Notes under the pieces: model-generated
What the model was told of the DNA's origin: nothing
What the model saw: only the letters and a program-made list of their open reading frames with translations
Databases searched by the model: none
Shown here: in pieces, positions 1-49,913 of the stretch
Position numbering within the stretch: position 1 is the stretch's first letter
Layout of the letters: each line of letters begins with the position of its first letter
Translations under genes and position numbers: made by a program
Origin: Haliotis rufescens
Taxonomy: Eukaryota
Direction of reading: 5' to 3'
Assembly (NCBI RefSeq): GCF_023055435.1
Contig: NW_025964112.1
Coordinates: 56,916,001-56,980,000, forward strand
Length of the DNA stretch: 64,000 nucleotides

Positions 1-157
1 TGCTTTACCATTATAAGTTATATTCTACAGTTAATGCCCCTTTTCTTTACACTATCAAAAATGGAATACTGGTTTTCCTACATATTGTCTTGTATTGAGG
101 ACGACATTTCTTTTAGTCTTGAAACAAAGAATTCATATATTCTGTTTTCACACTTAC

Positions 158-184
158 GTGAAGAGGAAACATATGATCGCCGTC
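158..184 (-). CDS. Micro-exon, 27 nt, (R)RRSYVSSS; last exon visible in the window
   Basis: Identical exon with intact CAG/GTAAGT; no stop reached. Confidence 0.72.
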
Positions 185-3100
185 CTGTAATAAAATTTGA
201 AGTGGTAAATGTGATAATCTTCATAGTACTGACCATAATTTAACTATAGATGACACAGCTCTTTTGATGTATATATTATTTTGGTGGTGATTCATATGTT
301 AGTTGAAGGTTTGAAATTTGGATTCCAAAAACATAGGATGTATATTAGACCAAGCTAACAATGGGAGTATTTATGTTTTATGAAATTGATGGTTTTAAGT
401 GATATTTGAAAAGATTTTATCCTTTATCTCTTGAAACAACAAGGTCAATAATATCTCTTATTGTTTGGTTCTCACACATAGTGCTAGAAACATATGATTG
501 CCGTCTTGTAAAGTAATAAAAAAGAACATTAATCATGATCTAATGCAACAATAATCAGGCCATAAATGATACCTAATTGTATGAAGGAGTTTTAGATATT
601 TGTGTTCTTTTTCATCTTCTATTGACTAAAAAACATTCGGGATTAACTCGGTACAAGTGGGAAATAGATTAATCTTACAACAATATTCATTCTGTGCATG
701 TATGGATATGAGAAGTTTGCATTGTCAAAAGATAAATTTAGTGTTGAATATATATTACATTAAACTTTATTTATGCATAAACTCTCGGGCAAAAGAAACT
801 ATACACCCATGTTTGATGGTAAGTAAAACTGGACAAACAAGAAATGGTTATTCGATGGGAAAGTATTTCGCACGGGTGTCGTAGTTATGTTTTGGATCTT
901 AAGTTTGTAGTGATTCGGCGACTGATTTAGCCTAAATACATTTTGATAACGATTGTTATTTTTTGATCAAATCAAACTTTCAAGAGTATATTTCTTGTTT
1001 GCCCGGCAATATCTTACAATCTTAATGAAATGACAAAAGCATGTTTTATGCAACATTCCCTTCATTATTATAAGCTATATTGCGCCGTTAATGTTGTTTA
1101 CTTTATACTTTCAATAATGGATTAGTGGTTTCCTAAATATTGGTTCTTTATTTAAGCAAATATCCTTTGACACTTCAAACCAAAATATATACACCCTCTT
1201 TTAACACTCACTGGAGTTGGAACGTCGACCTGTAATGCAATGTTAAGAAACAACTGTTAAACCTTCATGATACTGGCCATAATTCAACTAAACGTAAAAC
1301 AGTTCCTTTCCTGGTTTTATGTTAGGCTGTATACAAATATGGAGAATGTTTCTGATACTGGTTTCCTAAATTCATCATCCACTAAAATGAAACAAATTCT
1401 TAGCCTATAAGAGACAAATGGAAAATAGTTTAAATGTATTATAATCTTCATTCTGATGATGTGACGATATTAAAAGATTGCAATTAGTGTTACACATAAA
1501 TAATATTTGACTAATTTCTAGATGTCTACCCGAAAAGGTGTTGTCACTGTTATATACGATATTACGAAAATGACAAGAGTGACAAGTGCAAACGATGCTT
1601 TACCATTATTAATGATGTTCTACAGTTAACGCCCCTTTTCTTTACACTATCAAAAATGGAATAATGGTTTTCCTACATATTGTCTTATATTGAGGACGAC
1701 ATTTCTTTTAGTCTTGAAACAAAGAATTCATATATTCTGTTTTCACACTTACGTGAAGAGGAAACATATGATCGCCGTCCTGTAATAAAGTTTAAAGTGG
1801 TAAATGTGATAATCTTCATAGCACTGACCATAATTTTTATGTTAGGCTGTATACAAATATGGAGAATGTTTCTGATACTGGTTTCCTAAATTCATCATCC
1901 ACTAAAATGAAACAAATTCTTAGCCTATAAGAGACTAATGGAAAATAGTTTAAATGTATTATAATCTTCATTCTGATGATGTGACGATATTAAAAGATAG
2001 CAATTAGTGTTACACATAAATAATATTTGACTAATTTCTAGATGTCTACCCGAAAAGGTGTTGTCACTGTTATATACGATATTACGAAAATGACAAGAGT
2101 GACAAGCGCAAACGATGCTTTACCATTATTAATGATGTTCTACAGTTAACGCCCCTTTTCTTTACACTATCAAAAATGGAATAATGGTTTTCCTACATAT
2201 TGTCTTATATTGAGGACGACATTTCTTTTAGTCTTGAAACAAAGAATTCATATATTCTGTTTTCACACTTACGTGAAGAGGAAACATATGATCGCCGTCC
2301 TGTAATAAAGTTTAAAGTGGTAAATGTGATAATCTTCATAGCACTGACCATAATTTTTATGTTAGGCTGTATACAAATATGGAGAATGTTTCTGATACTG
2401 GTTTCCTAAATTCATCATCCACTAAAATGAAACAAATTCTTAGCCTATAAGAGACTAATGGAAAATAGTTTAAATGTATTATAATCTTCATTCTGATGAT
2501 GTGACGATATTAAAAGATAGCAATTAGTGTTACACATAAAAAATATTTGACTAATTTCTAGATGTCTACCCGAAAAGGTGTTGTCACTGTTTTATACGAT
2601 ATTATGAATATGACAAGAGTGATAAGTGCAAACGATGCTTTACCATTATAAGTTATATTCTACAGTTAATGCCCCTTTTCTTTACACTATCAAAAATGGA
2701 ATACTGGTTTTCCTACATATTGTCTTGTATTGAGGACGACATTTCTTTTAGTCTTGAAACAAAGAATTCATATATTCTGTTTTCACACTTACGTGAAGAG
2801 GAAACATATGATCGCCGTCCTGTAATAAAATTTGAAGTGGTAAATGAATGTGATAATCTTCATAGTACTGACCATAATTTAACTATAGATGACACAGCTC
2901 CTTTCATGTATATATTGTTTTGGTGGTGATTCATATGTTAGTTGAAGGTTTGAAATTTGGATTCCAATAACAGAGGATGTATATTAGACCAAGCTAACAA
3001 TGGGAGTATTTATGTTTTATGAAATTGATGCTTTTAAGTGTTATTTGAAAAGATTTTATCCTTTATCTCTTGAAACAACAAGGTCAATAATATCTCTTAT

Positions 3101-6100
3101 TGTTTGGTTCTCACACTTAGTGCTAGAAACATATGATCGCCGTCTTGTAAAGTAATAAAATAGAACATTAATCATGATCTAATGCAACAATAATCAGGCC
3201 ATAAATTATACCTAATTGTGTGAAGGATATTTAGATATTTACTACAGAAATGACAAAAAATGTGTTTTAACGCAATATTCCCTTCATTAGCATGTTACAG
3301 AGTTAATGTTGTTTACTTTACACTATGAAAAATGGAATAGTGGTTTCCTAAATATTTGTTCTTCATTAATGTAGATATCCTTTGACACTTGAAACAAAGG
3401 ATTTTTATACATCCCCTTTTCACACTTACTGGAAGAGGAACGTCGACCTGTAATGTTAAGAAGCAACTTTTAGAAATTTTAGTTTTAAATATTTACATTT
3501 TAATACTCATTCTGAGCATGTATTGATATGAGCATAATTATGTTTCATCAACGATAAGATGACATCAAATTTTATCCTCAAGTTCTGCATGTTATTATTT
3601 TATATTGTTTCGTGTGACGATTCTTTTCAATACATAATAAGAACTATGAGAGATAAGACATTACATCACTGACGACCACAAGTGCTAAAGCAAGGGAAAG
3701 AAGTTAATATCAACATTATTTAATCATAGAAAGAAGAAGCAAGTGTTTTAACACATTTGAAACTTCACAAATACCTTTTTTTGACGTAATAAACGCGCCG
3801 CTCTAAAAAGCGCCCACGGCGATATTTGCTAATATATTAGCTAGTGAACAATCCCAATTAGCATCCCTTCCGATTGATCAATGTACACAACACTTATTTA
3901 TTCGCGTAAAATACGCACTCGTGTGTTATATGCACCCTTAATTATGAGCAATTAAATTCTGGTAAAATGTATCTCTCGTATATAAACATTTCAGGCTGTC
4001 AGCATAAACCACAAAATTTATCTTTCAACCCTGGTTTATTTTCATCAAAATAATATTCTAATAAGAGCCACCTATTTCTAATTTTGAGAGCGCCCTTGGC
4101 GCTTATTACGTCGAATACGGTATCTATCAGTAATACTACTTTTCATTTACGCCACTATTACGGAAAAGGTCGAGATATTGATACATAATCATGATTATTA
4201 TAAGACAATCATCGCATTTACTTGAATCAGGATGGAAACTACGAAATTCTGAGGAAAGTAAAATGTTGTGACATATTGATGCTTTGTTCTTTCAAATAAT
4301 TTATATCATGAGACTCAGTGACGTTTTTACAGTCTTCTTATTATGTGTTTGTCAATGAATTACATCCAGGCAAAGGTGTTACCAAAACATGGATTCTTAT
4401 ATCACTCGAAACAGAAATCAGCTAATACAGATATTTTTTGCAACCACAATAAAATATGACCTTCTGAAATATATAAAAGCGTCAAAACCTCTGCAATACC
4501 TAACACAAGTGCGATAGCCTATCGGCACGTACATTACAAGACGTCACCACAGCGAAAAAGTATGAATAAAATGAAGTGGTCAAGTTATTGTCATCGTCGG
4601 TTGAACTTGTCCTTAAAGGTATGTTTATACATTTGATTGCTTGGTTTTAAGGATTTTGTTTATAAAAACAAAAACAACAACAATAAAATTAGCTTAAACA
4701 TGACAAGCGTTATTGCCTTAACTTGGGTAACTGGGAAGCCATACCACTAAAAGCAGGAAGTTATACTGACACCCCTCTTTATACACGTTTTACAAGGATT
4801 ATCAGGTTATCGTGTTACACTATGTTATGTATAAAGGCACCAATTACGTGTGTTTAAGATAAATTCATTCTACATATTCTTACGTGAAGAGGTCTGTTTA
4901 GAATCTGTAAAAATAGAAAAGGATTAAGTGAGCTGTATCGAAACCTGCATCACCACCTATATGCAAAATATGACACATAAAACTCAGTTGTTGATACACT
5001 GCATCCAGAAAATCTGTAAGAGAACAAAAAGTAAGAACTTAAAACTACTTAGGAGCGCTGCATAATGCTACTATTTCTAGAAGTCACATTTAATTTTCAT
5101 CTCAATAAGTTCAGTAGTGAGAGAGAAAAACTCTCGCCGTGTTTGCGGCTATCTTTCTAAAATCGATGTCAAGGGCGAGATCATGCATTGACACAATGTA
5201 AACATTACCGATAATTGTTTTGCATTTCAGCGTCTTGGTTCCATGATGTCTTGGTTTGTGTCCAAAAAGGATTTGATAAACCCTTCTCTGACTGATTAGT
5301 GTATAACACTGTTTCACCTTATTTGATAAGCAAAAGATGGGTACCACCGACAGTAAGAAAACTAAAAGTATGAGCCACTGGCTATTGTATTCTCTTGATA
5401 TTCTGAAGAGCCCTGTTTGTGGATTTGTATTAGTCATAACGTAATAAAAGCCTAATAAAATCAGTTAGAGGACAACGCATGCAATAACGGAATGGAATTA
5501 CAAACTACAAACAAATATCCCCAGATATATTCATGATCTCTGACGTGTTTTCTTCAAGATATAACAATAATGGGTCTAATAAACAAGAGATGATACCTAG
5601 ACATATTTTATATCCTTAAAAAACAAGAAACGCATAATAATATAAACAATGAAATTATCAAATGCTCAGCCGAAACGATACGTAGGTTTTACTGAGTAGA
5701 ATCGCCAAATGACTTACCTTTTACACTGGAAGATTTCAGCGATCTTCCTACAAGAAAATTAATGCAAAAATTATAATTCTTTTATCTATAAATATTAATA
5801 ACGCATTTGAAGATTTGACTTCTTTTTTTCAAAGATATTATATATTTCAGTTATGTGATAAATCTTAAACACAATGTTTGCATTTACAAATTAAAGCTTA
5901 TATTCTTAAAATTATACAAAAAGATTAGAAATATACTTACTTCGTGTAACTGCAAAAAGGTAAAGATACACACATTAGTATATTTGAAATATGATTATTA
6001 AAGCCTATTATAAACTAGAAACTGATAGAGGAAAATAAGATATTTTCTATTTCACAGAATTGGCGTAAATCCATTACATTTCCATTTATATATATTTATG

Positions 6101-9100
6101 GTCATAGTTCAGATTATAGCTATAAGAACGCAAGTGATGTATAGCAAGATCTATGAATGGTTAACACATTTTAATGTATAGATATAATGTAATGTATACA
6201 AACTCGTACCTTCACAGTGCACATTCTTTGACATAAGTCAAACGTTCACGCCGTTGTTGAATTAAATGGTTGTCAGAAGAAGGAGTCATTGCGGTATATT
6301 AGAATATTCAGTGTACAATGCTGCTGTAAATGCTGCTCATATCAATTTTATCGACAGACGAGGAATACTTTTGGAATCTAATAAATTCATGTTCTGAAGA
6401 AACATTCTAGACATTTCATAACAAATCCGACTCATAATTGTACACTATAGTCATAAGGAAAACGGCGCGTGTATGTATGATACATTCATGTAACAAGCAG
6501 TGGCGCTTAATTTGGACATTGGTGCACATGACGTCGCGTGTCAAGCTGCCTTTATGTTGAGGTACAAATGGTTGGTTGGTTACATGAGGTTGGTTGGTTC
6601 AGCATGTTAAGCGCGCCAAGGGCATAGACGTCTACGTGAATGTCTCGAAACGTATACCTGATGATGCAGCTTATCGGTGTCTGTCACGACTGACTATTTC
6701 GTTAGGGATGAATCTATACATTCATGAGTCCAGGTGCGTAAATGTAACATAGTGATTCTACGTAATTATATGCATTTTAACTGAAAAGCCAATGTAATAT
6801 ATATCTAACTCTGCGTCTGAAAAGAGAAAACATTGTAAACAAAGCATTAGTGTTCTTCTGAATGCGATAAAAACGAGAAATTGGGACATAGGTCTGAAAT
6901 TATCGTCCATGCGCGTGTCTCATCATTTCAAAATGATCGCAATATTGATGTGTGTAATATGTGCATTATCGTAGGAAAATGATGTTATCTCATGCCATGA
7001 CATCCAAATTGTTGAATACTTAGTTAATATATTAATCAAGGGATATGGGATTTTTTAATTAAACATCTGGATATTCCGATCTTTGAATAAGTGATTGCTT
7101 ACTTTATGTTATCATCTTTGAATATTTGTTTGCTTAGTGATAGAAATTATAGGTATGGAATATCTTTTAAGATTTGGTTTACAGACACATAAGTCTTATT
7201 CATCTACATTCGGAACATGTCGCTTCAATGTGTTTTCGAGATGGAGAAATTAATTATGCTGGTCTTAATGCAAAACCAACAGTTATCATAAAAGTTATTG
7301 AAAATTTAAAACAAAACTATTATGACGAATATAGACTAAATGACTTTACACTCTGTTCAGTGTCCTAAGTGTGTACACTCAAGCAACATTTCTGGTGTCC
7401 ATCGCCTTGATCTTGCTGAAATTGCTAAAAGTGGCTTAAGCCATACTCACTCACCCACTCAGTCACACACATAAAACAAACACCTATTAACCATCCATTT
7501 TAATGCGTACTGGGCTAAAACAAATCTTACACCTCATCTGCTTTCCCTTTCAAACTGATGTGCATCTCTATTGGTAGTGGAGAGGCATTTCACCAGAACT
7601 TGTGTACAAAACAAATATCGCTAAGCAGACTTTGAATCTTTTTCCGTTTCTTCAAATGAAAAAATATCTTAAAAAGTTAATAGGTTCTTTACAGCCCAAT
7701 TAAACACCTATATACCTTAACTCTTTTAAGAAACAGAGGGTGGTTTAGAGTTGTGTGTTTCTGAGAAATCACAACATGATGAATAAGAACATGACCACAT
7801 AGTTACATTTGTGATGGGTCTACTTTGGTAAAGGACTTACAATATTTAATTTGATGCAGTCTGGAATTACTAATTTTGCTTTCTTTTAAATTTATGTCAA
7901 GACATTTATACTCAATATGCTTGTAACACAAAAACTGTCAACTATGATTTCGTGAATCAGTGAAATATATGGGGGCTTTCCACCCCCACCCCACACCCCA
8001 CATCTCCACCCACACCTACAACCCTCCACGGCTACCTAATTTCCTTCGACGTTTTCTTTCCTTCTTGCTCTTACGCCGATTCTTGCCGCTTTTACGTCTT
8101 CTGCCTCCTCGCCTTTTACCCCTGCCTCTCCGTTTTCCGATCTTCTTGCGCTTACGCCGATTCTTGCCGCTTTTACGTCTTCTGCCTCCTCGCCTTTTAC
8201 CCCTGCCTCTCCGTTTTCCGATCTTCTTGCGCTTACGCCGATTCTTGACTCGTTTTCCTCCACGCTTACTGCTCGGGCCCCTTCTCCCTGTTTTGTTTCG
8301 TTTTCCCGTAGCCTTGGTACGTTTGCGGTTTCGTTTCTTTCTCCCTCCTTTTCGTTTTCCTCTGCTTTGACCTGTATTGTCTGAAACACACGGAAAGAAC
8401 GAATACTTATCAGTAAGGAATGCCGAAGGGAAACAGTTGTTTATGAACATATTTTAGTGGTATTACCGAGTAAAATGGTTTATGGAGTTGTCTCCCTTTC
8501 ATATCTGCCAACAGTGGTCATGGCGGTAGAGGACGCCACACAACCACCGCTAGCAAACCAACTTCGTTGCAATGCAGTTGATGTTCGAGTTTTTCCGCAA
8601 TTCAGAGGAATGAAGAAAACGTGAAGAAGTAATTCAGGTATCATCGGCTTTGGCGAAGAGTTGTTTTCACCGATAGGCCCAGCGTGTCTGGGTACAGTTA
8701 TAAGTCGAACAGATGTAAAAGTGTTTGGATGGGAATATCAAGCAGATAGGTGGAACTGTTCTACCTAAGCATGTATTCACACTAGTTTCATACATGTATG
8801 GTACTGCTTGTTATATCCCTTCCATCTAAAGGACAAGCGACAGCCGTCTCATAAAACGTCTCATAAAACCTAAGTTTCAGTATATAACCTCTTCACCAAC
8901 ATTCAAAGGAAGAATATATTGTTTTCTTCTCATATCCCTTACGGGTATATAGAGATTACGATACGGGTGTCTGTCGGAAACCGTTTTTCTTACGAGTTGT
9001 TTCAAAACGTAGCTGACGAGTGAATGCGAGTTTGATACGTTTATAAACAACGAGTTGTTAGATAAATTGTGTACGAGAGCAGTAAACTGTTTCTTACAAA

Positions 9101-12100
9101 TCATAAAATCGCACAATTTTAGCATCGATTAGATGCATATTTGATCTATTCGCATAATGGCAGTGGCGCATTAATATATAACACAACGGTCACATGTGAC
9201 GTCATCCGTCTTACTGCTCACTTGGTCTGATGTGTCTGTCACATTAAATATTGGTTAAACGGACCGCCGTCGAATTCGATCTATCTTCCATACGATGCTT
9301 TGAAATAATGTGTTTTAGTGTATACTTCAGTGCGGAAGAGAAGTTGAGAAAAGTGATATTTTCACTGCAGTGAACATAACACTTTGACGGAAACCAACCC
9401 CTCTTTGCTGTATTTTTTTTTAATTTTCTGTATATAATCGTAATAATAGTCCATTTATATGGCGCTGTACTCCATGCATAAGCTTGCTCCAAATACTTAG
9501 ACATTGTTACCCCGGTCAGTGGATCAGTGTGTACACGATATTCATTCTTAGCTCCCTTGGGGGGTATACAACCCAAGCTGCCCGTGAGGCGCTAGAAGGT
9601 TAACAGTCATAGCCATCTCATCCTACCGGGTACCCATTCCCTGCTGGGTGAACAGAGGCCTATTACGAGCAAAGTCATTTTCCTAAGGTGACACCACATG
9701 TTCTACATGTGCTTTTGTGGGGGGGCTGGAGTACATACGCCTAACCAGATTGGTTACACATGCTGAGAAGAGATTCTGAAATTGCCGAGCATTTTGTTAT
9801 TTGTCGTTTGTTGTATGACGCCGCACTCAGCAATATTCCATCTACGTAACGACGGCCTGGAATTAATCGAATCTGGACATGAAAATTCAGTGAATGATAA
9901 TATGCACAACGTCATTTGCGGTCGGAGTACGATGACAGGCAGTCAACGATCACCGATCGCTGACCATGCGATCCTTTTAATCGCTGCTTACGGCCAGCAT
10001 AGGTGGTCCTATTCTAACCCGGAATCCCCGAAGGGATGGTAGGGGGTTGGTTTGGGTGATCGCGAGTAATAGTCTAGATAACGATGCTTTCAAAGCAATG
10101 ATTTGATACAGAACTGATCTAAAGTTTCAGATCTATTCTTACAGTGAGTGAGTTGGATTTAACGCCGCTTTTAACAGTATTCCAGTTATATCACGGCGTG
10201 TCAGCTTAATGTGGGAGGAAAGCCCGGAGTGATGCAGGTCTCAGACGTTTACCATTTCGGCGAAACATAATCGGGGCGAACCGGGATTCGAACTCACAAT
10301 CATAGGGTTCTGGCGTCCCCAAGGGACGCAACTCTGCACAGCGAATCGCTGCGCCTTAGTCGACTGGGCCACCCGTGCCCCCTTTTATTCTTAGAATGTG
10401 TGTAAACGTGAAGGGATGTACGAAAAGGCGGGTCTCAGTTGAGCTAAACATTAATAACTCAAGAATAGTAATAAAACTATTTTAATGACCATAAGAAATA
10501 TTGCCTGAAAGCAAAGGTCATTGTCCGATTCCGACTGTAATACTAGTAGATAGTAAAAAGAATGTTTTCATTAATCACTATCAAATAGTGATGAAATCAG
10601 GTGTTCGCCGAAAGGTGGGCGTTTCCTACCACACCATTGGCACCCGTCACAAACACACGTAAAGGCAAGTCAGCAAACACGGGAACACGTGGTACAAGTT
10701 GAAGTAGGGAATTGCATCGGACATAAGTTTGGTCACTGATGCGTCAAATTTGGAAATGGCCTTCACTTGTCTACCTTAAAACTTTTCGAAAGCTTTACTA
10801 AGGCCTGGAATGCTGTAGCCCTGATCAAAAAACATTTTAACACGAATTTTTGAATTATTCGTAGAAAGAGAAAATATACCTTTTCGATTTCCAGAAGCAG
10901 TCTTACTACGCTGAGCTCCAGCTGAAAATAATAAGCGTAATTTATTGAAATAGTCATATCATAATAGAATGTTCCCAGAACTAAAAAAGTGTGTATCAAC
11001 TGACGCATATCTCCAAACAGCATAAACCATTTCCACAACTTAAGTAGCCATTTGTATTTAATCAGAATACCCAACCATGTGGATCTTTTATTGGCATTTA
11101 GAAGTTAGATGAACATGAATACATGACACTTTTTATAATCTAAAGACAAAAGCCAGCATCTTCGTACCCAGCGTATACTCTACTGTGGTTTAACCATATC
11201 ATTAACCGCAAGTGGACATCTTGATTGTCTTATTGTTATGCTGTCACCACAGTCAGCTCTTTGTCATCACACTCAGCCCAATTACTACACCTTCATTGTA
11301 CTTAATTCGCTTCTCTCCCTTTAATACCCTTGGGTTCCGCGTTTAGTATTATATACTACAGTGAGGAAGACTGTGTTTGAGAAAAGTTATATTTTCACTG
11401 CAGTGAACATACCACTTGATATTTCACTGCAGTAAAAAATAACAATTTGACAGAACTATTGTCATACAAGAGTTACCTCCCCGCAAATTGTCTCCCTTTA
11501 TCGTAAGTGTTTGGCAAGTACACAAACTGTTGGCTTCTTTTTAAAGTTAGTTCAACAATGACAAGGGAAAATAAATGACATTTATAGAGTTAATATTTTC
11601 TGTTTTGTTATTTTCTTGAAAATGTTTCGATATAAACTAAATTTCTCATGTAACTCGTCAATCGAGACTGTTCGTTTCGCAAAGCGCCATTTCTGTTACT
11701 TGAACAGCCGTGTCGTTGCCACTTGTGAAAATATCTCCTTTCCCTCGTCACTCCATGAGAAAAAACATGATATTTCACTCGACACTGATTTAACATCTAT
11801 ATCTTTGTGCCGTATCAAACTTGTATGAACATGTCAGTTTGTATATATATGTTAACTCAAACGCTTACTCAGTATTAATCTGATTAAGTGGCAGGAAGAA
11901 ACGTCGTTACAGAGAATAAAGAAGTTTTTATCAATACCAAAAAGTGTCATGTATTCAAATATAGTTGTCGAAACATGTTAAAGTAATCCCTATTTTGATT
12001 GTATATAAATCAGACGGGATGTGAGTTGAAATGGGGATTAACGTTGAGTTCTCTCTCGCGTTCTCTAAGTAAAACCTGTTTTAATAAAACAAGAGGTTTC

Positions 12101-15100
12101 CCCTTGTGCCAGTATATTATGACAGGGGACGAATCTTGATACTCTTTATGTCCATATTTACAACTAGATAACGTTCGGCATGCAGCAAAAGAACCTTGAT
12201 TTAGAGTTCAACAAGATTCTGGTTTCATGCGAAATTGTGGGACACATGGTTGCAGCAAGTTCAACTTTATATATGATACTATCTACATGCAGCAATGGGA
12301 ATCTAGAGTATTAGTTCGACAAGGTTCTGGTTTCATGCAAGAGGTGGTAAGAACTGAGACATTATCGTCCATGCATCATTTCACGATGATCGCAAAAGAT
12401 TGTCGTGTGTAACATGCGCACAATGAAATGCAAAGGATGTTACCTCATACCATGGCATCACAATTATGGAATACTTGCTTAATTTATTAATAAAGGCATG
12501 CAGTTCAAGACCTGGGATTTGTGATTATTCATTATCTTTGAAACTGAATATAAATCGTGATTGACAAAGACTGCATGGCTTTACAAGTTGTTCAATATTA
12601 TTTGTACGCACAAAAACAAACACTTTTTAACCATCCATCTTAATGCGTGTTAGGGGCAAATGGAAACTTATGCCGAATTTGCTTTCCTTTTCAAACTGAT
12701 GTACAGTATCTATGGGAGTGGAGATACGTTTCACCAGAACTTGTGTAAACTCCCAAAAAATGCTTAGCAGAATCGGAATCTTTTTTCAGTTTGTTCAAAT
12801 GAATGAAATATCCTAGAAAGTCATTGGGTTCATTTTCATCCCAATTACACATCTATATACCTTAAAATTGTTTGCAAAAAGTGGGAAGTTTAGAGTTGTG
12901 TGTTTCTGAATCACAATATGATAATAAGAACATGACCACATAGGTACATTTGTCATTGAGTATACTTCTGTAATGGATATAGAACTCTAAACTACTTTCA
13001 CAATTATTCAGTTGCACGTTTCATTAACTTTCACAATTTTCATAGCTTCAAAACAATAATTTGTAGCAACACTATCTTCCCTTTTTTTTGTAAATGTTAA
13101 CTACAAACGGTTTATGTTCACAAAATCCTAACACGAAGTAATATAAAAGAGGTCAAGGATATATCATGCATTGATCCTATTTCTGTGAATTAGTGTTACA
13201 CATCATGCAAATTCTATCCCATGCATATCTCAGTAATGTTACCTCCGCGGTTTCTTTCCCGAGCTCCTGCAGAAAGAGTAAGTCATATATTTATTCTTGT
13301 TTTAAACGAATGAGAAGCAAAAGAGAAAAGTACTTACCAAAGAGTGGCAATGCACCATTGTCGAATGTCTTCTTCTCTTGCCAATTGGTCTTGGGTGACA
13401 CAACTCGCTGTGCAGAGTTGCTTCCCTTAGTCCTTCTAGGGTATACTGGTTGTTCGAATCCCGATTTTGAATCTTGGCCTGTTATCCGATCCGCGGTTTC
13501 GTGTTTCCACGCCGTGATGTAACTGACGTACTGCTCAGAATGGCGTAAAAAAATCACGCACACTCGACACACGCACACTACGCCTAGTCTCCATGCAAGA
13601 GGTGAGGTGAGGTGAAATGGGGTTTAACGTCGCGTCCAAGATTATTGCACTTATATAGCGACGTGCATGCACGTGTATGTATGTGTGAGGCTGCTTGTAC
13701 TAGTCCGGACTAATGCCGATTTATAGTGCTAGCTCACTGAGATACCCTGCCGCAGTTTAACATGAATACCCCGCTCAGAGTGAGTGAGTGAGTATGGTTT
13801 TACGCCGCTTTTAGCAATATTCCAGCAATATCACGGCGGGGGACACCAGAAATGGGCTTCACACATTGTACCCATGTCGGGAATCGAACTCGGGTCTTCA
13901 GCGTGACGAACGAACGCTTTAACCACTAGGCTACCCGACCGGTAACGGTAGACACAGTATACTGTCTCCGAGCCGACCAGTCCTTGTTTTAGCCCCTTAA
14001 TGCCGAGCGCCAGACAAGGTAACAACAAGTACCATCTTTTAACGTCTTTTGGTATGACGCGGCCGGGGATCGAACCCCGGACCTTCCGCTCTCCGGGCGG
14101 ACGCTCTACCACTAGACCACGGAGGCGGTCCTCCATGCAAGAGACTTAATTGTGGTGTGATATTGCTGAAAGATTGCTCACAGCGGCGTAAACCGATATT
14201 CAATCTCCAGTAACATAGTTCCATTGTAGGAATAATCCGTTTACATTTAGTTAAAATAAAACTATGTGTTTTTTAACGTTATAAAATGATTGTTTCGTTT
14301 AGTGATAAATGACACCGTTTATTTTCCAACACGAACTGATTAGAAACAAAGGGGCTTTTAGTCGTTAAATGTTCACGAGTTAAATGTTATCTCAAGTTAT
14401 CGCACCAGAAGAACACTGTACAACAACATCTGATACAAAAACAGTTCTTACCTGATTTGGACCCTGTGGATTTCGAACCTGTAAATAGAAAAAAAATTCT
14501 CAATATTGAAAAGGCAACATTTATCGCATACCCTCAAGTATGTCTACATTTCTGAAATGTTGCATTACCTGAGGAATTATATTTATACAAGGGTTGTCAG
14601 TGTGCTTCCACGGCAGTGTCATTAAAGCAGCTTGTATTTCTAATCCTTATTTTTGTAGCTTACAATCACCCTGACAAATAGTAACTATCTGCTGATGTTA
14701 TCTTTGGAATGCTGGTACATATATTTCCAACGGAACCCTTATAAGTATGTCATATACATTATGTTCTCCTTGAAAACTATCATGTATGTAATAAAATCTG
14801 CTTATATGGTGTTTTTTTACAACTACTCAACTTGATCTGTCGTCTATTGATGTACTCAACTTGTGTCTGTCCCTTTGTGAGCATTGCAACTTTACTGAGA
14901 GTTAAATGGTACAGAATAATCATTTTCAAATCAAGCAAAAAGTACTTATCCCCAACATTTCAACATCATGTTTTATTGCTTACGGCAAAAGAAAATTACG
15001 TTGACCCCAAACTTCTTTAATTACGACGTCAATCCATGCATCTTCGTCAGCGGTTAGTCGTTTCAGGTCAGAATTGGTGATATTTGACTCATTGTGTTAT

Positions 15101-16899
15101 GTTTCCTACTGCTATGTCAAACACGTTGGACATTGACTCCGGAAATAATACGGTTTTTTAAAGTTTTTAGATGTTCTCCTTCTGTGGTAACATGGTAATA
15201 CATAAGTTGTTTACTACCAATGATATTCCATATGCTTACATGGAGAGTGTATATGACTCATTTGGTAAACCTAACAAATTAGAATTAACAACGACCATCA
15301 TATATTTCATTCGAACACTAGCATTCATTAAAGGGTTTGGAAAGGATCTATCTGTAAATGTTGTGCTATTGAGGAAATGGTTGACAGTAGAATCTCACTT
15401 AAAGCACTTTATATTTAACGTCGCATCGGTAATACATCAGCAAAATACCGATTGATATCATTTGACGAGTTAAGACATTGAAACAAAATTCATTAAAGGT
15501 AAATATACGATAATAAGAAATAATCCTTGGAGCATTATTCAAAATTAAAACAGAAATATACAATACAGTAATTACGTTTGCAACTCTGCGCAGTTATATT
15601 CAATCGTACAACAACAATTCAAAGATCTACAGGTAAATAAAGAATGTGTTAAAAATTAGTTCTAAAGTACAAATGAGTTAGGTCTTTAATCGGAAAATTG
15701 TTTCAGAAAATAAATGACAAGAACCTACTAAAAAGGTATGGTAATTTAAGCAATCAGACATTGGAAATTTGTACTTTTAGCTATTTCGAGGAAAAATATT
15801 TATTGTAAATATTGACTGAAATAACTCTAATATGTCTATCTGATCAATCTCCATACATTGAAAATATTTCGTGATGGAGCTTGCAATATTCGGTTCCACA
15901 CAAATATATGAGCGAGCGAAAACAGGAAAATGATGTTTAAAATTCTGGAAATGAAGATACATGCTTTTGACTAAATGCGTGGCTAGTTTTAATAAATATA
16001 GAGATAATCAGTGAAAATAATTTATTAGTAAACAAGTGCCTATAAGGATATCATGAGTTTAAACTTGTCCAGACTGTTCCTCTGTGTCATTTTCGCAAAA
16101 TTATTTTGACTAACCCTTTGACACCTGCACACGTATAACAATAATATTTAGATTATATTGGGTACAATGTTCGAAGGCCATTTCTGTTTTCCCCGCTGTG
16201 ATATTGCTGGAATATTGCTAAAAGCGGCGTAAAACCAAACTCCCTCACTCACTCGCTTAGATTGTATAATGTTTAGAATTTATAAACATAATGAAAATAG
16301 AACGCTTTTCTCCAGGTACAAATATTGCTTTGTAGTTAATAAAAGCGACAAAACTATTGTCATGATCAAAAGAAATCTCTGTTAAAGAATATCAAATAGC
16401 GCCTAAATGTGGCATCTAAACTATACTTTTTCTGCATATTAGTATATATGCGTGGTCAAGTGCCCTGCTAGCGAAGTAATAAGAGCCGGTGAGTGAGTGA
16501 TTGAGTTGGGTTTAACACATTATCAATATTAACTCAATATATTAAAACAACAACTACAGCCTTCTGCATTACCCAGATTGTCAGAAGGGCTGTATTCCTG
16601 GTAGCAAACCCGGGCACTCTCCCAATGTCGGTCAACAGATTGGGAGGTACCAAACCTGAGGCACCGAGAACAATGGGGAGTCGGACAACTTGACACTTAA
16701 GATGCGTGCTCTGCATATTTGCCATGTTTTTCCTGAATCTTGTCAATTACATTAGTGTCAAAAGGGACAGAAAATTCAATAATAAAAATGATTTCATTTG
16801 ATATATCAAAAAGGACAAGATCAGGTATGTGGCCTGGATGGGTCTGAGGCTGTATACGGTCCTATTCCCACTAATTTTGTATTTATCATTTTCCACTCT

Positions 16900-16956
<57 letters not shown>

Positions 16957-17842
16957 AAATAGTATTAGTAGTAGTAGTAGCAGTAGTAGTAGAAATAGTA
17001 CTAGTATATAAATTAATCACAATCAAACAATTTGTGGAACAAGTTGGTATAAAGCATATGATCAATTGAAATATTTATTATATACCAAGTTAAGAGCGTA
17101 CAAAATTAACAGTTAAACTATAAGCAGGGCTTGCAGGTAGTGAAAGCTGTCAGTGTCGAGAGTAATTCAAGAGTGTCCTTTCTTATTCAATATCGACAAC
17201 ATGATTATACAACATATATATCAAACGGCATGTATGTGATACACTGGTACAATTTCTATATCAGTTATCAACACTGCATTACCTTTACACTGTTCATTAT
17301 CACATATTCCTTTGTAGCTAATTTGCCCAGCTGAAGATGTATTGATATTCTCCAAAGTTAACATATTAATGGTCCCTACTGCTGTTGTCATTCCATAGCT
17401 TACTGCTGTTGCCCACTAAACTAACTAAAGAGTCCACCGTGAGTGGTTAAGGTCTTTCTAATGGGCATATGTTACAAAGGTGAGACCGACACTTAGTCAA
17501 AGGTAATCAATAGCTAGTTTATACTAGTTCACATAGGTTTCAACAGATAGACAGTACGATCCGCTTGAGCTGCATTTAACAGTCTCAGTCACACCTATTA
17601 AATCACAAGCCAAGACAATGCAAAAAGAAACCTTAAATATCCTTCTCCTTAGTCATGAAATCGTCTTTCACATGTTAGAATGAAAAAAAGTTGTCTACAT
17701 TACCTTACTGACGAAACACTATTTCCTGCCTCCTATTAACTAACTCATAATCCCTTTTAAAGTAAGAAATGAGCTTACTTTGTGCAGACGAAATGGCCAC
17801 CAGGGTGACAACCACCAGAAGGAGAAGTATCCACCACCTCAT
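158..17842 (-). CDS. Multi-exon micro-exon gene for a secreted Arg/Lys/Ser/Gly-rich basic protein (3' end lies beyond window start). Model: join(17842-17779,14478-14452,13266-13243,10921-10880,8380-8036,5949-5941,5747-5718,4904-4884,4248-4222,3447-3430,2819-2793,2299-2273,1779-1753,1229-1212,184-158)
   Basis: Manual splicing gives 733 nt, open throughout: MRWWILLLLVVVTLVAISSAQ-SSKSTGSKS-GARERNRG-AGAQRSKTASGNRK-DNTGQSRGKRKGG...RKRRRKL-VTR-RRSLKSSSVK-DSKQTSS-QFRSFHPDS-SRRSSS-RRRSYVSSS-RRRSYVSSS-RRRSYVSSS-RRRSNS-RRRSYVSSS. Every internal exon is flanked by YAG and GT, is a multiple of 3 and is phase 1-1. No transcript evidence available. Confidence 0.75.
481..505 (-). pseudogene. Decayed micro-exon (RRSYVSST-like) with mutated splice sites
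   Basis: Homologous to the 27-nt exon, but acceptor CAG is CAA and the GTAAG donor is lost. Confidence 0.55.
601..1025. repeat. Dispersed repeat inserted in one cassette copy; related to about 46500-46918
   Basis: Absent from the paralogous cassette at about 3240; shares aaagaaa(c/g)tatacacccat...acaaacaagaaatggttattcg with 46805-46870. Confidence 0.55.
1212..1229 (-). CDS. Micro-exon, 18 nt, (R)RRSNS
   Basis: CATTGCATTACAG|GTCGACGTTCCAACTCCA|GTGAGT; paralogue of 3430-3447. Confidence 0.72.
1753..1779 (-). CDS. Micro-exon, 27 nt, (R)RRSYVSSS (duplicate cassette)
   Basis: Identical exon with intact CAG/GTAAGT. Confidence 0.72.
2273..2299 (-). CDS. Micro-exon, 27 nt, (R)RRSYVSSS (duplicate cassette)
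   Basis: Identical exon with intact CAG/GTAAGT, 520 bp from neighbouring copies. Confidence 0.72.
2793..2819 (-). CDS. Micro-exon, 27 nt, (R)RRSYVSSS
   Basis: TTTTATTACAG|GACGGCGATCATATGTTTCCTCTTCAC|GTAAGT. Confidence 0.75.
3120..3144 (-). pseudogene. Decayed micro-exon (paralogue of 481-505)
   Basis: Plus strand cacacttag-tgctagaaacatatgatcgccgtc-ttgtaaag; both splice sites degenerate. Confidence 0.55.
3430..3447 (-). CDS. Micro-exon, 18 nt, (S)RRSSS
   Basis: CTTAACATTACAG|GTCGACGTTCCTCTTCCA|GTAAGT; phase 1-1. Confidence 0.75.
3771..4122. mobile_element. MITE-like element with terminal inverted repeats
   Basis: Left tacc...gacgtaataaacgcg is inverted relative to right gcgcttattacgtcgaatacggta; TA ends. 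Confidence 0.5.
4222..4248 (-). CDS. Micro-exon, 27 nt, (Q)FRSFHPDS
   Basis: TTTTACTTTCCTCAG|AATTTCGTAGTTTCCATCCTGATTCAA|GTAAAT; phase 1-1. Confidence 0.65.
4884..4904 (-). CDS. Micro-exon, 21 nt, (D)SKQTSS
   Basis: TTTTCTATTTTTACAG|ATTCTAAACAGACCTCTTCAC|GTAAGA; 3' end CCTCTTCAC shared with the 27-nt exon family. Confidence 0.8.
5718..5747 (-). CDS. Micro-exon, 30 nt, (R)RSLKSSSVK
   Basis: TTTTCTTGTAG|GAAGATCGCTGAAATCTTCCAGTGTAAAAG|GTAAGT; phase 1-1. Confidence 0.8.
5941..5949 (-). CDS. Micro-exon, 9 nt, (V)TR
   Basis: CCTTTTTGCAG|TTACACGAA|GTAAGT; phase 1-1. Confidence 0.65.
6890..7835. repeat. Intronic segment paralogous to 12355-12975
   Basis: Collinear diverged blocks (attatcgtccatgc..., ttcaaactgatgt..., tttcaccagaacttgtgta, aataagaacatgaccacatag); this copy carries a SINE fragment at about 7365-7470. 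Confidence 0.85.
8036..8380 (-). CDS. Large Lys/Arg-rich exon (345 nt, protamine-like composition); could instead be terminal, with stop at 8016-8018
   Basis: Acceptor TTCTTTCCGTGTGTTTCAG at 8381-8382, in phase 1 with the K/R-rich ORF 8016-8450; internal 81-bp duplication (8071-8151/8152-8232); weak phase-1 donor AG|GTAGCC at 8035. Confidence 0.8.
   Translation of the reverse strand, partial: TIQVKAEENEKEGERNETANVPRLRENETKQGEGARAVSVEENESRIGVSARRSENGEAGVKGEEAEDVKAARIGVSARRSENGEAGVKGEEAEDVKAARIGVRARRKENVEGN
9540..9720 (-). mobile_element. Old SINE fragment with Nin/Deu-like core
   Basis: ccgggtacccattccctgctgggtgaacagaggc resembles the conserved Nin/Deu SINE domain (recognised from memory). 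Confidence 0.45.
10143..10382 (-). mobile_element. SINE family B (tRNA-Leu-like head, ACTC tail), internally deleted copy
   Basis: A box TGGCCCAGTCG and B box GTTCGAATCC; homologous to copies at 22716, 47783 and 52968. Confidence 0.85.
10880..10921 (-). CDS. Micro-exon, 42 nt, (A)GAQRSKTASGNRK
   Basis: TTATTATTTTCAG|CTGGAGCT...AATCGAAAAG|GTATAT; phase 1-1; composition matches neighbouring exons. Confidence 0.7.
13243..13266 (-). CDS. Micro-exon, 24 nt, (G)ARERNRG
   Basis: CTTACTCTTTCTGCAG|GAGCTCGGGAAAGAAACCGCGGAG|GTAACA; phase 1-1. Confidence 0.75.
13375..13580 (+). mobile_element. Old diverged SINE family B copy
   Basis: tcgctgtgcagagttgc.tccctt, gttcgaatcccg and cacgccgtgat...ggcgtaaa match family B. 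Confidence 0.7.
13602..14130 (-). mobile_element. MetaSINE-like tRNA-derived SINE with a nested family A SINE
   Basis: tRNA head GACCGCCTCCGTGGTCTAGTGGTAGAGCG...GGTTCGATCCC followed by Meta-like GTCATACCAAAAGACGTTAAAAGATGGTAC; TSD ctccatgcaagag at 13589-13601 and 14131-14143. Confidence 0.8.
13779..13941 (-). mobile_element. SINE family A (tRNA-Asp-like head), nested
   Basis: Near-identical to copies at 18966, 50861 and 51234. Confidence 0.9.
14452..14478 (-). CDS. Micro-exon, 27 nt, (S)SKSTGSKS
   Basis: TTTTTTTTCTATTTACAG|GTTCGAAATCCACAGGGTCCAAATCAG|GTAAGA; phase 1-1. Confidence 0.8.
16545..16746 (-). pseudogene. C-terminal remnant of an RLE-type (R4/R2-like) non-LTR retrotransposon ORF
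   Basis: PIVLGASGLVPPNL...VPG...MQKAVV resembles the PIVIGALG...QKAVL terminus of such elements (recognised from memory). Confidence 0.5.
16901..17005. repeat. (AGT)n microsatellite
   Basis: Seen directly. Confidence 0.95.
17779..17842 (-). CDS. Exon 1: start codon and signal peptide (MRWWILLLLVVVTLVAISSAQ)
   Basis: CACC-ATG context, basic n-region, hydrophobic core and S-S-A cleavage-like end; donor A|GTAAGC at 17778 in phase 1; TATA and CCAAT boxes upstream. Confidence 0.85.
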
Positions 17843-17968
17843 GGTGAAGATGTGGCTGTGGGCGACACTGGTTCCTACAACGTCGCTGTCACTGGTCAAC
17901 TGTCGTTCAACGTAAATGAATTCGGGAACGACCGCAGCGTTTGCCGTCAGGCCTTCTTCCAGCTCAGC

Positions 17969-18046
17969 TTTATACTCTCATTCCGTTACCTGATGTTCCA
18001 GGGCATCTTTCATTGGTTGAAACCTGACGGAAAACATTCTGATTGG
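17969..18046 (-). promoter_or_regulatory. Pol II core promoter of the micro-exon gene
   Basis: On the minus strand: TATAAA at 17969-17974 (about 130 bp upstream of the ATG) and CCAAT boxes at 18012-18016 and 18042-18046; a further CCAAT on the plus strand near 18093. Confidence 0.7.
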
Positions 18047-18965
18047 CTGAGACGTGATGTTTTGGCGAAGGGAGGACTTTTATTGCTATTGACCAATAGA
18101 ACGTAAGCCACATGATGATATGTATTGAATAGGCGTCTATGAGAGTCTATCAGACGTGGCAGACTGTATCAATAATCATGAAACGGGCATTGTTGCATAG
18201 GTGTAATGTAGCCACGAACGCCTTGTCAGTCTCCCTCTGCATATAAAGTAATCTTTCAAGTTAATCCTGTTTAACTGTTTCTTCTTGTTATTGTTGCCAT
18301 AATAGTTTATGTATTAGATAATGTTAAATCAATTTTTTATTATTCAAATGTTCATACAGTAACGGTAAACGATATATGCCTTCAGCGAAGTGTTTGGGTA
18401 CATAATTACATGGATAATATCAAATAGTTCCGTTATAGTAGCTACACGTATTCATAACTGGAATCACCCATAAGACAGCGATGTGTGATAGATGCAAGGA
18501 CAGGAAACTGAATTAATAAATATATTATTCAGAATCGCATGAAAAAATCTGAAAGTGAGAAATACTTGAAACTATATTAAAATCGTGCCGTTTATTTTGT
18601 TCTCATTTTCGATAACAAGAGCGTTAAACTCGTTGTTCAACAAACTAGTGTTATTCCCATGTACGTTACGCTATGCGCATTTTTGGTCTGAAACCTTATC
18701 ATAAATAGAATACACACGTTGCACGAATCACTTAAATGAGCGGCGCAGCCAAGTGTGAAATCTCAACGTCAGTCACGAGATGAGATACATGTTATTTGAA
18801 AAGAAAATGACAAGAATTATATTTATTATGTATTATCACTTATTTTTGGAGACCTAATTAGTATTTCATCAATACATGCATAATAAAGTTTAATAATCAC
18901 AGTTCAATGCTACCATGAACTCATCGACATGTTCCCGTTCTTCATCATGATACGATTTTTTAAGA

Positions 18966-25292: not shown

Positions 25293-25433
25293 NNNNNNNN
25301 NNNNNNNNNNNNNNNNNNNNNNNNNNNNNNNNNNNNNNNNNNNNNNNNNNNNNNNNNNNNNNNNNNNNNNNNNNNNNNNNNNNNNNNNNNNNNNNNNNNN
25401 NNNNNNNNNNNNNNNNNNNNNNNNNNNNNNNNN
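25293..25433. other. Assembly gap
   Basis: N run. Confidence 1.
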
Positions 25434-33139: not shown

Positions 33140-34415
33140 TTAAAAATATCTGATCAGTTAATCTACAGCATGGGGTCACCCGTACTAGCCAGAACACTGT
33201 GTCTGATTGGATAATCTGCAGCATCTGGCCACCCGTACTACCTAGAACAGTGTGTCTGATTGGATAATCTACAGCATAGGGCCACCCGTACTACCTAGAA
33301 CACTGTGTCTGATTGGATAATCTACAACACCTGACCACCCGTACTACCTAGAACAGTGTGTCTGATTGGATAATCTACAACACCTGACCACCCGTACTAC
33401 CTAGAACACTGTGTCTGATTGGATAATCTGCAGCATCTGGCCACCCGTACTAACCAGAACATTGTATCTGATTGGATAATCTACAGCATCTGGCCACCCG
33501 TAATACCTAGAACATTGTGTCTGATTGGTTAATCTACAACACCTGACCACCCGTACTACCTAGAACAGTGTGTCTGATTGGATAATCTACAACACCTGAC
33601 CACCCGTACTACCTAGAACAGTGTGTCTGATTGGATAATCTACAACACCTGGCCACCCGTACTACCTAGAACAGTGTGTCTGATTGGATAATCTACAACA
33701 CCTGACCACCCGTACTACCTAGAACAGTGTGTCTGATTGGATAATCTACAACACCTGGCCACCCGTACTACCTAGAACAGTGTGTCTGATTGGATAATCT
33801 ACAACACCTGACCACCCGTACTACCTAGAACAGTGTGTCTGATTGGATAATCTACAACACCTGGCCACCCGTACTACCTAGAACAGTGTGTCTGATTGGA
33901 TAATCTACAGCATCTGGCCACCCGTACTACCTAGAACATGGTGTCTGATTGGATAATCTACAACACCTGACCACCCGTACTACCTAGAACAGTGTGTCTG
34001 ATTGGATAATCTACAACACCTGGCCACCCGTACTACCTAGAACAGTGTGTCTGATTGGATAATCTACAGCATCTTGCCACCCGTACTACCTAGAACAGTG
34101 TGTCTGATTGGATAATCTACAACACCTGGCCACCCGTACTACCTAGAACAGTGTGTCTGATTGGATAATCTACAGCATCTGGCCACCCGTACTACCTAGA
34201 ACATGGTGTCTGATTGGTTAATCTACAACACCTGACCACCCGTACTACCTAGAACAGTGTGTCTGATTGGATAATCTACAACGTCTGGCCACCCGTAGTA
34301 GCCAGAAAACTGTGTCTGATTGGATAATCTACAACACCGACAAGCCGTATTACCTAGAACACTGTGTCTGATTGATTAATCTACAGCAAGGGGCCACCCG
34401 TACTAACCAGAGCAC
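33140..34415. repeat. 53-bp minisatellite array II (about 24 units)
   Basis: gtgtct at 33305 and 33358 gives period 53. Confidence 0.95.
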
Positions 34416-45700: not shown

Positions 45701-45784
45701 GACAAAATAAGACAATACCATTTTCTTGTTATTGTTTTACAAACAAGGCGACGAATTGTTTTATATATCGGAAAGAGGCAAAAT

Positions 45785-46918: not shown

Positions 46919-47076
46919 NNNNNNNNNNNNNNNNNNNNNNNNNNNNNNNNNNNNNNNNNNNNNNNNNNNNNNNNNNNNNNNNNNNNNNNNNNNNNNNNNN
47001 NNNNNNNNNNNNNNNNNNNNNNNNNNNNNNNNNNNNNNNNNNNNNNNNNNNNNNNNNNNNNNNNNNNNNNNNNNNN
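46919..47076. other. Assembly gap
   Basis: N run. Confidence 1.
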
Positions 47077-49716: not shown

Positions 49717-49913
49717 ACAGGGACAATATACAGGGATAGACAGGGGTTATTTTGTTTTAACGTGGGGTTGCGCAAGGCTACACACGTGTGTGCTCTCGGG
49801 CGAGACTCTCTCCACTTTTGGCCGCACTGGACGCGAATATAGTTAGTTATTGAAAGTTGATATTGCTGTAAGGTCTGCTACTACATCTACTAATGTAAAT
49901 GCTTGGTCTATAC

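Follow-up and report, generated by a model that had tools for sequence, protein, structure and literature searches.

A candidate micro-exon-rich gene for a secreted, highly basic protein in Haliotis rufescens

Background

Does the minus strand of a gastropod contig encode a secreted, highly basic protein in exons too small for open reading frame (ORF) finders and, if it does, how far does the gene extend and which known gene type does it resemble? The question is raised by 64,000 nucleotides (nt) of Haliotis rufescens DNA (assembly GCF_023055435.1, contig NW_025964112.1, positions 56,916,001 to 56,980,000), hereafter the window. An initial annotation, made from the letters alone, had proposed a hidden gene between positions 17842 and 158 of the window that consists of a promoter, a signal-peptide exon and 14 internal exons, and had compared it with the micro-exon genes (MEGs) of schistosomes. 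In this follow-up, positions are given in window numbering. Negative coordinates lie to the left of the window start, where 70 kb of leftward DNA was taken in. All exons described are on the minus strand, and a slash marks a splice boundary or a cleavage site. We consider it very likely that a gene for a secreted basic protein is present. The case for a single giant gene in which the exons of a long tandem array are coding is about evenly balanced.

Results

Exon 1 and the putative promoter

The proposed signal-peptide exon is present. The coding part of exon 1 (17779-17842, 64 nt) starts with the ATG at 17842, encodes MRWWILLLLVVVTLVAISSAQ and ends at the phase-1 donor AAA/gtaagc (donor score 2.8). 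Its signal peptide comprises 21 codons with an n-region (MR), a 15-residue hydrophobic core and the site SSA/Q; the call rests on the (-3,-1) rule. Over 55 kb of the minus strand, from +18.1 kb to -37 kb, this ATG is the sole strong signal-peptide-like start. The DNA of exon 1 is found in one copy in the genome. The promoter elements were also located on the minus strand: a TATAAA motif at 17974-17969 and two CCAAT boxes at 18046-18042 and 18016-18012 form a putative core promoter (17969-18046) about 130 nt upstream of the ATG, its function being suggested by consensus match. A microsatellite, (TAG)n/(CTA)n, with about 36 units lies in intron 1 at 16900-17006.

Transcription and splicing of the Lys/Arg exon

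The largest internal exon in the window, exon A (8036-8380, 345 nt), is single copy, encodes about 49% Lys+Arg and begins in phase 1 at the acceptor tttcag/AC. Fourteen runs presumed to be RNA, from 7 studies and 4 coded organisms, contain part of 7800-8420. Four of them were aligned to 3001-9000: X1 and X2 from organism A, which is the window's own species, X4 from organism B and X7 from organism C. The aligned data are assembled contigs and show presence and junctions, not expression levels or transcript ends. In the organism A runs, the share of query words found (0.30-0.41) is compatible with the exon alone.

Contigs of all three organisms (X1 record 8, X4 record 22 and X7 record 30) match the window up to 8382 and then continue for 85, 71 and 94 letters, respectively, that are foreign to the genome at this place. 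X7 differs from the window by two mismatches, X1 and X2 by none. Sequence divergence can therefore not explain the break in X1, and the departure of contigs from three organisms at the same position shows that the acceptor at 8380 is real. The match covers the terminal AG of the intron, not the C at 8383, so that the upstream exon must end in AG preceded by a base other than C. This ending is compatible with the 42-nt (...AAAAG) and 24-nt (...GGAG) micro-exons described below and incompatible with exon 1 (...AAA) and the 27-nt micro-exon (...TCAG). Hence, exon 1 and the Lys/Arg exon must be separated by one or more further exons, as the model requires.

At the other end of exon A, the depth in X1, X2 and X7 falls to 0 at 7601-8000, compared to an exon depth of 43-77. 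If the donor at 8036 is not used, the frame continues to the stop codon TAG at 8018-8016, near which no poly(A) signal was found. The zero depth and the missing poly(A) signal indicate that, in organisms A and C, the mRNA is spliced out of this stretch at most about 36 nt from the proposed 8036 donor, and exon A is probably internal in these organisms; the bin depths do not separate a 3' end at 8036 from one at 8016. A signal-peptide exon combined with a transcribed and spliced Lys/Arg exon bears out the proposed secreted, highly basic protein.

An 81-nt (27-codon) tandem repeat with 2.3 copies is located inside exon A (8061-8247). The organism B contig X4 record 22 jumps from 8142 to 8060 and has exactly one 81-nt unit fewer (8061-8141); the copy number of this repeat varies between species.

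Micro-exons in the window

All 14 internal exons of the initial annotation were located on the minus strand, namely 13 micro-exons of 9-42 nt and the 345-nt exon A. Each is bordered by AG and GT, has a length divisible by three (3n) and contains no stop codon in phase 1. The frame was verified exon by exon and junction codon by junction codon, and the junction codons are likewise free of stops. The total of 733 nt agrees with the earlier 244-amino-acid (aa) model. Thus, many symmetric phase-1 micro-exons that are invisible to ORF finders do exist at this locus as sequence features.

To judge this signal against chance, a generic splice-site matrix was applied to AG..GT pairs 6-60 nt apart, with identical copies collapsed. 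The score thresholds were derived from the model's own exons, a stricter first setting having recovered one exon only. On the minus strand of 1-17800, 13 distinct strong pairs were found, of which nine have a length of 3n, none of 3n+1 and four of 3n+2. The plus strand of the same region contains no strong pair. In the rest of the window, both strands together yield 30 strong pairs (8/30 of length 3n), and 8 kb of additional minus strand beyond the array yield 10, two of them 3n and both with stops. The enrichment of 3n pairs on the minus strand of 1-17800 is about 5.5-fold, an upper estimate given that the thresholds were tuned on model exons. Equally frequent symmetric pairs on the plus strand or in the 18-64 kb part, which had been named as grounds for rejecting the gene, were thus not observed. 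A raw pattern count is misleading here: a single 47-nt minisatellite at 36.7-38.8 kb gives 128 minus-strand matches.

Two checks are independent of the score thresholds, namely the composition by phase and the single-copy surroundings of the 27-, 24- and 42-nt exons upstream of exon A. In the nine non-redundant micro-exons, R/K/S/G/T/N make up 77% of the phase-1 translation, compared to 24% and 32% in the other phases, which upholds the described composition. Phase 1 is also the only phase that is stop-free in all nine, several of which are unrelated in sequence. Several array exons are near-identical repeat copies and do not count as independent observations.

The three micro-exons between exon 1 and exon A are all of phase 1-1. 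The 27-nt exon (14452-14478, (x)SKSTGSKS(x)) has an acceptor score of 9.2 and a donor score of 7.0, both in the top 0.1% of AG/GT sites of the window, and lies in single-copy surroundings. The 24-nt exon (13243-13266, (x)ARERNRG(x)) is also surrounded by single-copy DNA and combines a strong acceptor (9.4) with the donor GAG/gtaaca (1.8). The 42-nt exon (10880-10921, (x)GAQRSKTASGNRK(x)) ends in ...AAAAG and has lower scores (acceptor 3.1, donor 0.4). A dispersed repeat starts about 10 nt past its donor; the exon itself is unique.

Four candidate micro-exons follow downstream of exon A. The 9-nt candidate (5941-5949, (x)TR(x)) has an acceptor score of 6.7 and a donor score of 3.5. The 30-nt candidate (5718-5747, (x)RSLKSSSVK(x), donor 7.7) appears, from its sequence, to be an ancient duplicate, since diverged, of the cassette exon described in the next section. 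The 21-nt candidate (4884-4904, (x)SKQTSS(x), acceptor 7.5, donor 2.6) terminates in CCTCTTCAC/gtaag, as the 27-nt cassette exon does. The 27-nt candidate (4222-4248, (x)FRSFHPDS(x)) is the weakest member of the set, with an off-type composition and a donor (CAA/gtaaat) that scores 0.0. In run X1, the bin 5601-5800, which contains the 30-nt candidate, shows an unexplained mean depth of 51.9, while X2 from the same organism shows none.

The tandem array of micro-exon cassettes

The remaining micro-exons of the window belong to a locus-specific tandem array of intron-plus-micro-exon cassettes of about 520 bp, whose window part covers 1-3470. Its first unit contains an 18-nt exon (3430-3447, (x)RRSSS(x)), followed by a 27-nt exon (2793-2819, (x)RRSYVSSS(x)), two identical copies of the latter (2273-2299 and 1753-1779), another 18-nt exon (1212-1229, (x)RRSNS(x)) and a 27-nt exon that is the last within the window (158-184). 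The window start falls inside the array, which extends about 24 kb further left to about -24,209 and spans about 28 kb in all (contig positions ~56,891,560-56,919,440). The gene is therefore cut by the window edge, and its frame is open past 158. The sum of 733 nt in the 244-aa model stands, and the model itself is incomplete.

The array has a higher-order period of about 1.59 kb that comprises one 27-nt, one 18-nt and one dead unit. It contains 38 intact cassettes (19 of 27 nt and 19 of 18 nt), with zero copies elsewhere in the genome, and 34 of the 38 exons fall into four sequence variants. Most copies are 97-99% identical and thus uninformative as to whether the exons are real. Six diverged intact lineages (3447, 2819, 1229, -23,097, -23,608 and -24,192) share a mutual identity of 54-76%. 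In their alignment, the mean pairwise identity is 0.94 for the acceptor block (ttacag/G) and 0.88-0.94 for the donor block (gtRagtgt.aaa), compared to 0.52 for the median 9-column window; the two blocks rank within the four highest-scoring windows.

The length changes of the exons are all in frame: two independent 9-nt deletions shortened exons from 27 nt to 18 nt, and lengths of 21 and 30 nt occur in the older relatives. Indels in the cassette introns follow no in-frame rule. The older diverged copies (30, 21 and 18 nt) retain their exon borders. One lineage has lost both splice sites (acag to acaa in the acceptor, the G of the donor deleted); in addition, it lacks 2 nt and contains an in-frame TAG. 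It is represented by the 25-nt dead cassette at 3120-3144 and by a second copy of this broken type at 481-505, and its decay looks like relaxed constraint. Taken together, the conserved splice blocks, the in-frame exon indels and the decay of the dead units indirectly support selection on splicing and frame in the cassettes.

Lys/Arg exons downstream of the array

Two further Lys/Arg-rich candidate exons are located to the left of the array. Exon B (-26,699 to -27,163, 465 nt) has a phase-1 acceptor and the strong phase-1 donor CTG/gtaagatc, and matches only itself in a search against its own genome. Exon C, of about 4.8 kb, begins at a phase-1 acceptor at -30,521 and consists of about 45 repeats of 33 codons (~62% Lys+Arg) followed by a unique tail. 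It could end at a strong phase-1 donor after -35,323, which gives a length of 4,803 nt (3n), or at the stop codon at -35,421. The unique tail, whose base composition is normal, encodes eight Cys in 98 codons and has no stops in the Lys/Arg frame, compared to seven and eight stops in the other frames. The repeat periods of exons A and C (81 and 99 nt) are both 3n.

A blastn comparison of the stretch after exon A with the stretch before exon B gave no homology; two 9-nt candidates are therefore without support from duplication.

Proposed gene model

The features described above can be combined into a single minus-strand gene of about 53 kb, of which the earlier window model would be the 5' third; it is this gene, with coding array exons, that we regard as evenly poised. 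The order would be exon 1, the micro-exons of 27, 24 and 42 nt, exon A, four further unique micro-exons, the 38-cassette array, exon B and exon C. About 49 exons with about 6.8 kb of coding sequence would give a protein of about 2,270 aa with 39% R, 19% K, 15% G and 14% S. Exon 1 would set phase 1 and all later exons would be symmetric in this phase. The weak donor of exon A would be used, and the array exons, B and C would be joined in the same mRNA. Forty of the 47 junction codons encode Arg, since the split codons C/GT, A/GA and C/GA would yield Arg at the junctions and generate modules of the types RRRSYVSSS and RRRSSS.

Growth of such a gene may have come about through unequal crossing-over of its cassettes, each an intron plus a micro-exon. 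With every unit 3n long and in phase 1, gain, loss or skipping of cassettes leaves the frame intact. The predicted product is a disordered, extremely basic polycation that would be secreted. As a weak guess at its function, it might bind or condense extracellular polyanions by charge, such as the sulphated glycans of mucus or matrix, or an adhesive or mineral phase, and the Ser clusters beside Arg might serve as sites of phosphorylation or convertase processing.

More specifically, the locus may represent a mollusc gene of more than 50 kb with a 28-kb 'exon factory' of 38 cassettes and Lys/Arg exons of 345, 465 and about 4,800 nt, which together encode a secreted protein of about 2,300 aa with about 58% Lys+Arg. 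This full form is proposed tentatively, as we lean somewhat against it. If it is true, the gene would be the first described mollusc micro-exon-array gene and its product would be among the most basic large secreted proteins known, with a charge pattern that would be tuned by cassette copy number and skipping.

Alternative explanations

Several observations weigh against one giant coding gene. The phase-1 donor of exon A at 8036, TAG/gtagcc, is weak (score -0.5), and a higher-scoring donor, TAG/gtgtgg (3.6), follows immediately past the stop codon; splicing from the latter would leave all downstream exons untranslated. In organism B, contig X4 record 22 is colinear from exon A past the stop to 7545, so that exon A there looks terminal or placed before a retained intron. 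Neither a joint from exon A to a downstream micro-exon nor one from array exon to array exon is among the joints listed; the joint, loose-end and piece tables for 3001-9000 are filled by the dispersed repeat at 3780-4124. X4 record 17 follows the genome without a break through an 18-nt cassette and on past its donor into the intron, and is therefore unspliced. X4 record 17 and X7 record 23 both represent unspliced array sequence, with a depth compatible with many collapsed repeat copies. Three intronic blocks of the cassettes are about as conserved as the splice blocks. The Lys/Arg repeats are almost pure purine and open in all six frames, so that the length of their ORFs is no evidence of coding. 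For exon A and the exon C tail, no homologous or annotated protein was found in the searches reported below, and a secreted protein of 2,270 aa with 58% Lys+Arg would be unprecedented.

Much of this evidence would fit a small gene, which we consider unlikely. Exon 1, the three upstream micro-exons and exon A would encode about 173 aa and end at the stop at 8018-8016, while the downstream micro-exons and the 28-kb array would be exons of the 3' untranslated region, introns or non-coding repeat with splice-like motifs that are never translated. The colinear contig that runs through the stop to 7545, the position of the best donor near the end of exon A just past this stop, the missing joints to 5949, 5747 and the other candidates among those listed, the unspliced contig across the 18-nt cassette and the lack of an annotated protein in the searches are all in line with it. 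However, the zero depth at 7601-8000 in X1, X2 and organism C, together with the missing poly(A) signal near the stop, argues that the mRNA is spliced onward. A stop well upstream of exon junctions exposes an mRNA to nonsense-mediated decay, and here the stop would lie far upstream of many junctions. In untranslated or neutral cassettes, one would also not expect the retention of 3n lengths, indels that stay in frame and a stop-free phase 1 of constant Arg/Ser composition, nor the maximal conservation of AG and GTRAGT across lineages that are only 54-76% identical.

The array and the downstream Lys/Arg exons could alternatively form a transcription unit of their own, either another gene or a non-coding RNA. 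Contigs of X1 with low depth (~3.5-3.8), identical to the genome, cover 6205-6663 between the Lys/Arg exon and the 9-nt candidate, and a CCAAT/cAMP-response-element-like stretch is located near 6550. Scattered depth is also seen at 3001-7200 in X4 and X7, with none at 8401-9000. The 6205-6663 contigs could be pre-mRNA, read-through or a minor transcript, and pre-mRNA together with collapsed repeat copies accounts for the scattered depth. A separate unit would in addition have no signal-peptide-like ATG between 8016 and -37 kb on the minus strand, and the phase 1 in which every downstream exon has to be entered is supplied by the exon A donor. We regard this explanation as highly improbable.

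A different question is whether the locus is, in full, a diversity system of the MEG kind, whose symmetric micro-exons would be skipped in varying combinations to yield variant secreted proteins. With all internal exons 3n and of phase 1-1, any subset stays in frame. The first exon is a signal peptide, and the end of exon A differs by organism, being spliced onward in A and C and colinear in B. On the other hand, the contigs continue unbranched for 57 nt or more upstream of exon A, so that the nearest junctions look constitutive. Micro-exons make up about 15% of the inferred coding sequence, and with 34 of 38 array exons in four variants, skipping would mostly alter length, not sequence. The same-phase design is equally well explained as a by-product of cassette duplication, and a diversity system of this kind appears rather improbable.

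Should the array exons be spliced in as the single-gene model proposes, the locus would be a gene caught growing by tandem duplication of intron-plus-micro-exon units, with live, diverging and dead cassettes side by side, and would add molluscs to the flatworms and aphids in which secreted proteins are encoded by micro-exons. If true, the protein, a giant secreted polycation carrying phosphorylatable Arg/Ser modules, would represent a novel type of extracellular material and would bear on the biology of mucus, adhesion, biominerals or gamete coats.

Search for related proteins

Protein searches were made exon by exon, and the composition bias of the exons reduces their sensitivity. Exon A had no match in a set of 5.8 billion clustered proteins or in a set of 1.84 billion representatives. 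The unique tail of exon C likewise had no match in the protein-set search, and neither sequence had a match in the ESM Atlas. Searches against Pfam with the exon C tail gave sub-threshold matches only. Owing to the composition bias, these blank searches do not prove novelty. The locus illustrates that ORF- and homology-based annotation misses such genes entirely, since the very large collections searched yielded no protein of this locus.

Neighboring sequence features

Further to the left, between about -37,200 and -53,800 on the minus strand, open-frame pieces carry EGF-like (DENECVC), C-type-lectin-like, VWD-like (GDPH) and TIL-like Cys patterns. By these patterns they may belong to a mucin/VWF-type gene on the same strand, downstream of the locus; the ORF pieces tried here gave sub-threshold Pfam matches only. 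Another purine-rich repeat, with the minus-strand reading RRGRRGRRG..., is located at about -69,314 to -69,997 and is cut by the end of the examined DNA.

The dispersed repeat at 3780-4124 (~345 bp) is a transposon with at least 40 copies of 89-94% identity. Its copies are spread over many contigs of the genome, and it is very abundant in the contigs of the RNA runs, with a summed depth of up to about 180,000. Short GAGTGAGTGAG...-rich stretches, each followed by 'ttttagcaat.. cagcaa', recur in the introns (7440-7510, 16200-16270 and 16490-16510) and look like an element of the short interspersed type. No tRNA genes were found by ARAGORN in 1-18600. Runs of N occupy 25293-25433 (141 bases) and 46919-47076 (158 bases). 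The window also contains minisatellites without Lys/Arg-rich frames at 33159-34405 (53 nt x23), 36578-38786 (47 nt x42, C-rich on the plus strand), 40436-45701 (41-nt unit x128, 5.3 kb, 97% matches) and 48275-49717 (30 nt x49).

Comparison with known systems

MEGs have the greater part of their coding region in very small symmetrical exons, and alternative splicing of these micro-exons yields a pool of protein variants; the genes have been described as restricted to platyhelminths (PMC4350168). The locus resembles the MEGs of schistosomes and other platyhelminths in its N-terminal signal peptide, which is encoded by exon 1 (MR, hydrophobic core, SSA/Q), in its run of tiny 3n exons and in a secreted product without recognisable domains. 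It differs in the micro-exon share, which is 42-44% when the model is limited to the window and about 15% when the whole inferred coding sequence is counted. MEG proteins are small, whereas about 2,270 codons are inferred here, dominated by three conventional Lys/Arg exons, and the 38 array micro-exons descend from a single cassette by recent tandem copying. The locus lies in a gastropod genome, and no protein match relates it to a MEG family. Given the micro-exon share of only about 15% and the absence of any sequence relation, the locus shares the design of MEGs without belonging to them. The MEG-like character asserted by the initial annotation thus holds for the signal peptide and the symmetric 3n phase-1 micro-exons, and fails for the predominance of micro-exons in the coding sequence and for sequence relation.

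Outside flatworms, micro-exon genes for secreted proteins are already known in aphids, namely bicycle and megacycle. The internal exons of aphid bicycle genes are almost all of phase 2 and their products carry CYC motifs, and megacycle is a secreted protein of about 2,000 aa encoded by more than 100 micro-exons (bioRxiv 10.1101/2021.09.24.461719). These genes share with the present locus a secreted product and many micro-exons of the same phase, and megacycle is similar in scale. Here, in contrast, all internal exons are of phase 1, large low-complexity exons are interleaved, and Cys is absent from the micro-exon translations, occurring only in the tail and at the start of exon C. The phylum is different, and no sequence relation was found. 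The locus is therefore not a member of bicycle or megacycle.

The array belongs, by architecture and not by homology, to the class of same-phase cassette exons, with about 520-bp cassettes repeated 38 times, all 3n and of phase 1-1. Vertebrate matrix genes, such as elastin, the PEVK region of titin and fibrillar collagen with its 54-bp exons, also multiplied exons of the same phase by tandem duplication of exon plus intron. Elastin splits codons after the first base. Splicing of this cassette type is frame-neutral, and the products are repetitive and disordered. The mode of growth and the symmetry of all exons in one phase are thus shared. Their exons are mostly 27-190 nt, compared to 9-27 nt here, their products are hydrophobic, Gly/Pro-rich or PEVK-rich as opposed to 58% Lys+Arg, and there is no homology.

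In composition, the predicted product resembles protamine-like and other polybasic proteins and the polycation/phosphoserine pairs of marine cements, such as the Pc proteins of the sandcastle worm, with its extreme Arg/Lys content and Ser-rich modules that may be phosphorylated. By analogy, this combination suggests charge-driven binding or coacervation with polyanions. Protamines, unlike this product, are small and nuclear and have no signal peptide, and the Pc proteins are Gly/Lys/Tyr-rich and far smaller. The closest analogues are the aphid bicycle and megacycle genes and phase-1 cassette genes such as elastin. Compared to these systems, the locus stands out by the extreme smallness and number of its cassettes, by live and dead units that are visible together, and by the extraordinary basicity of the product.

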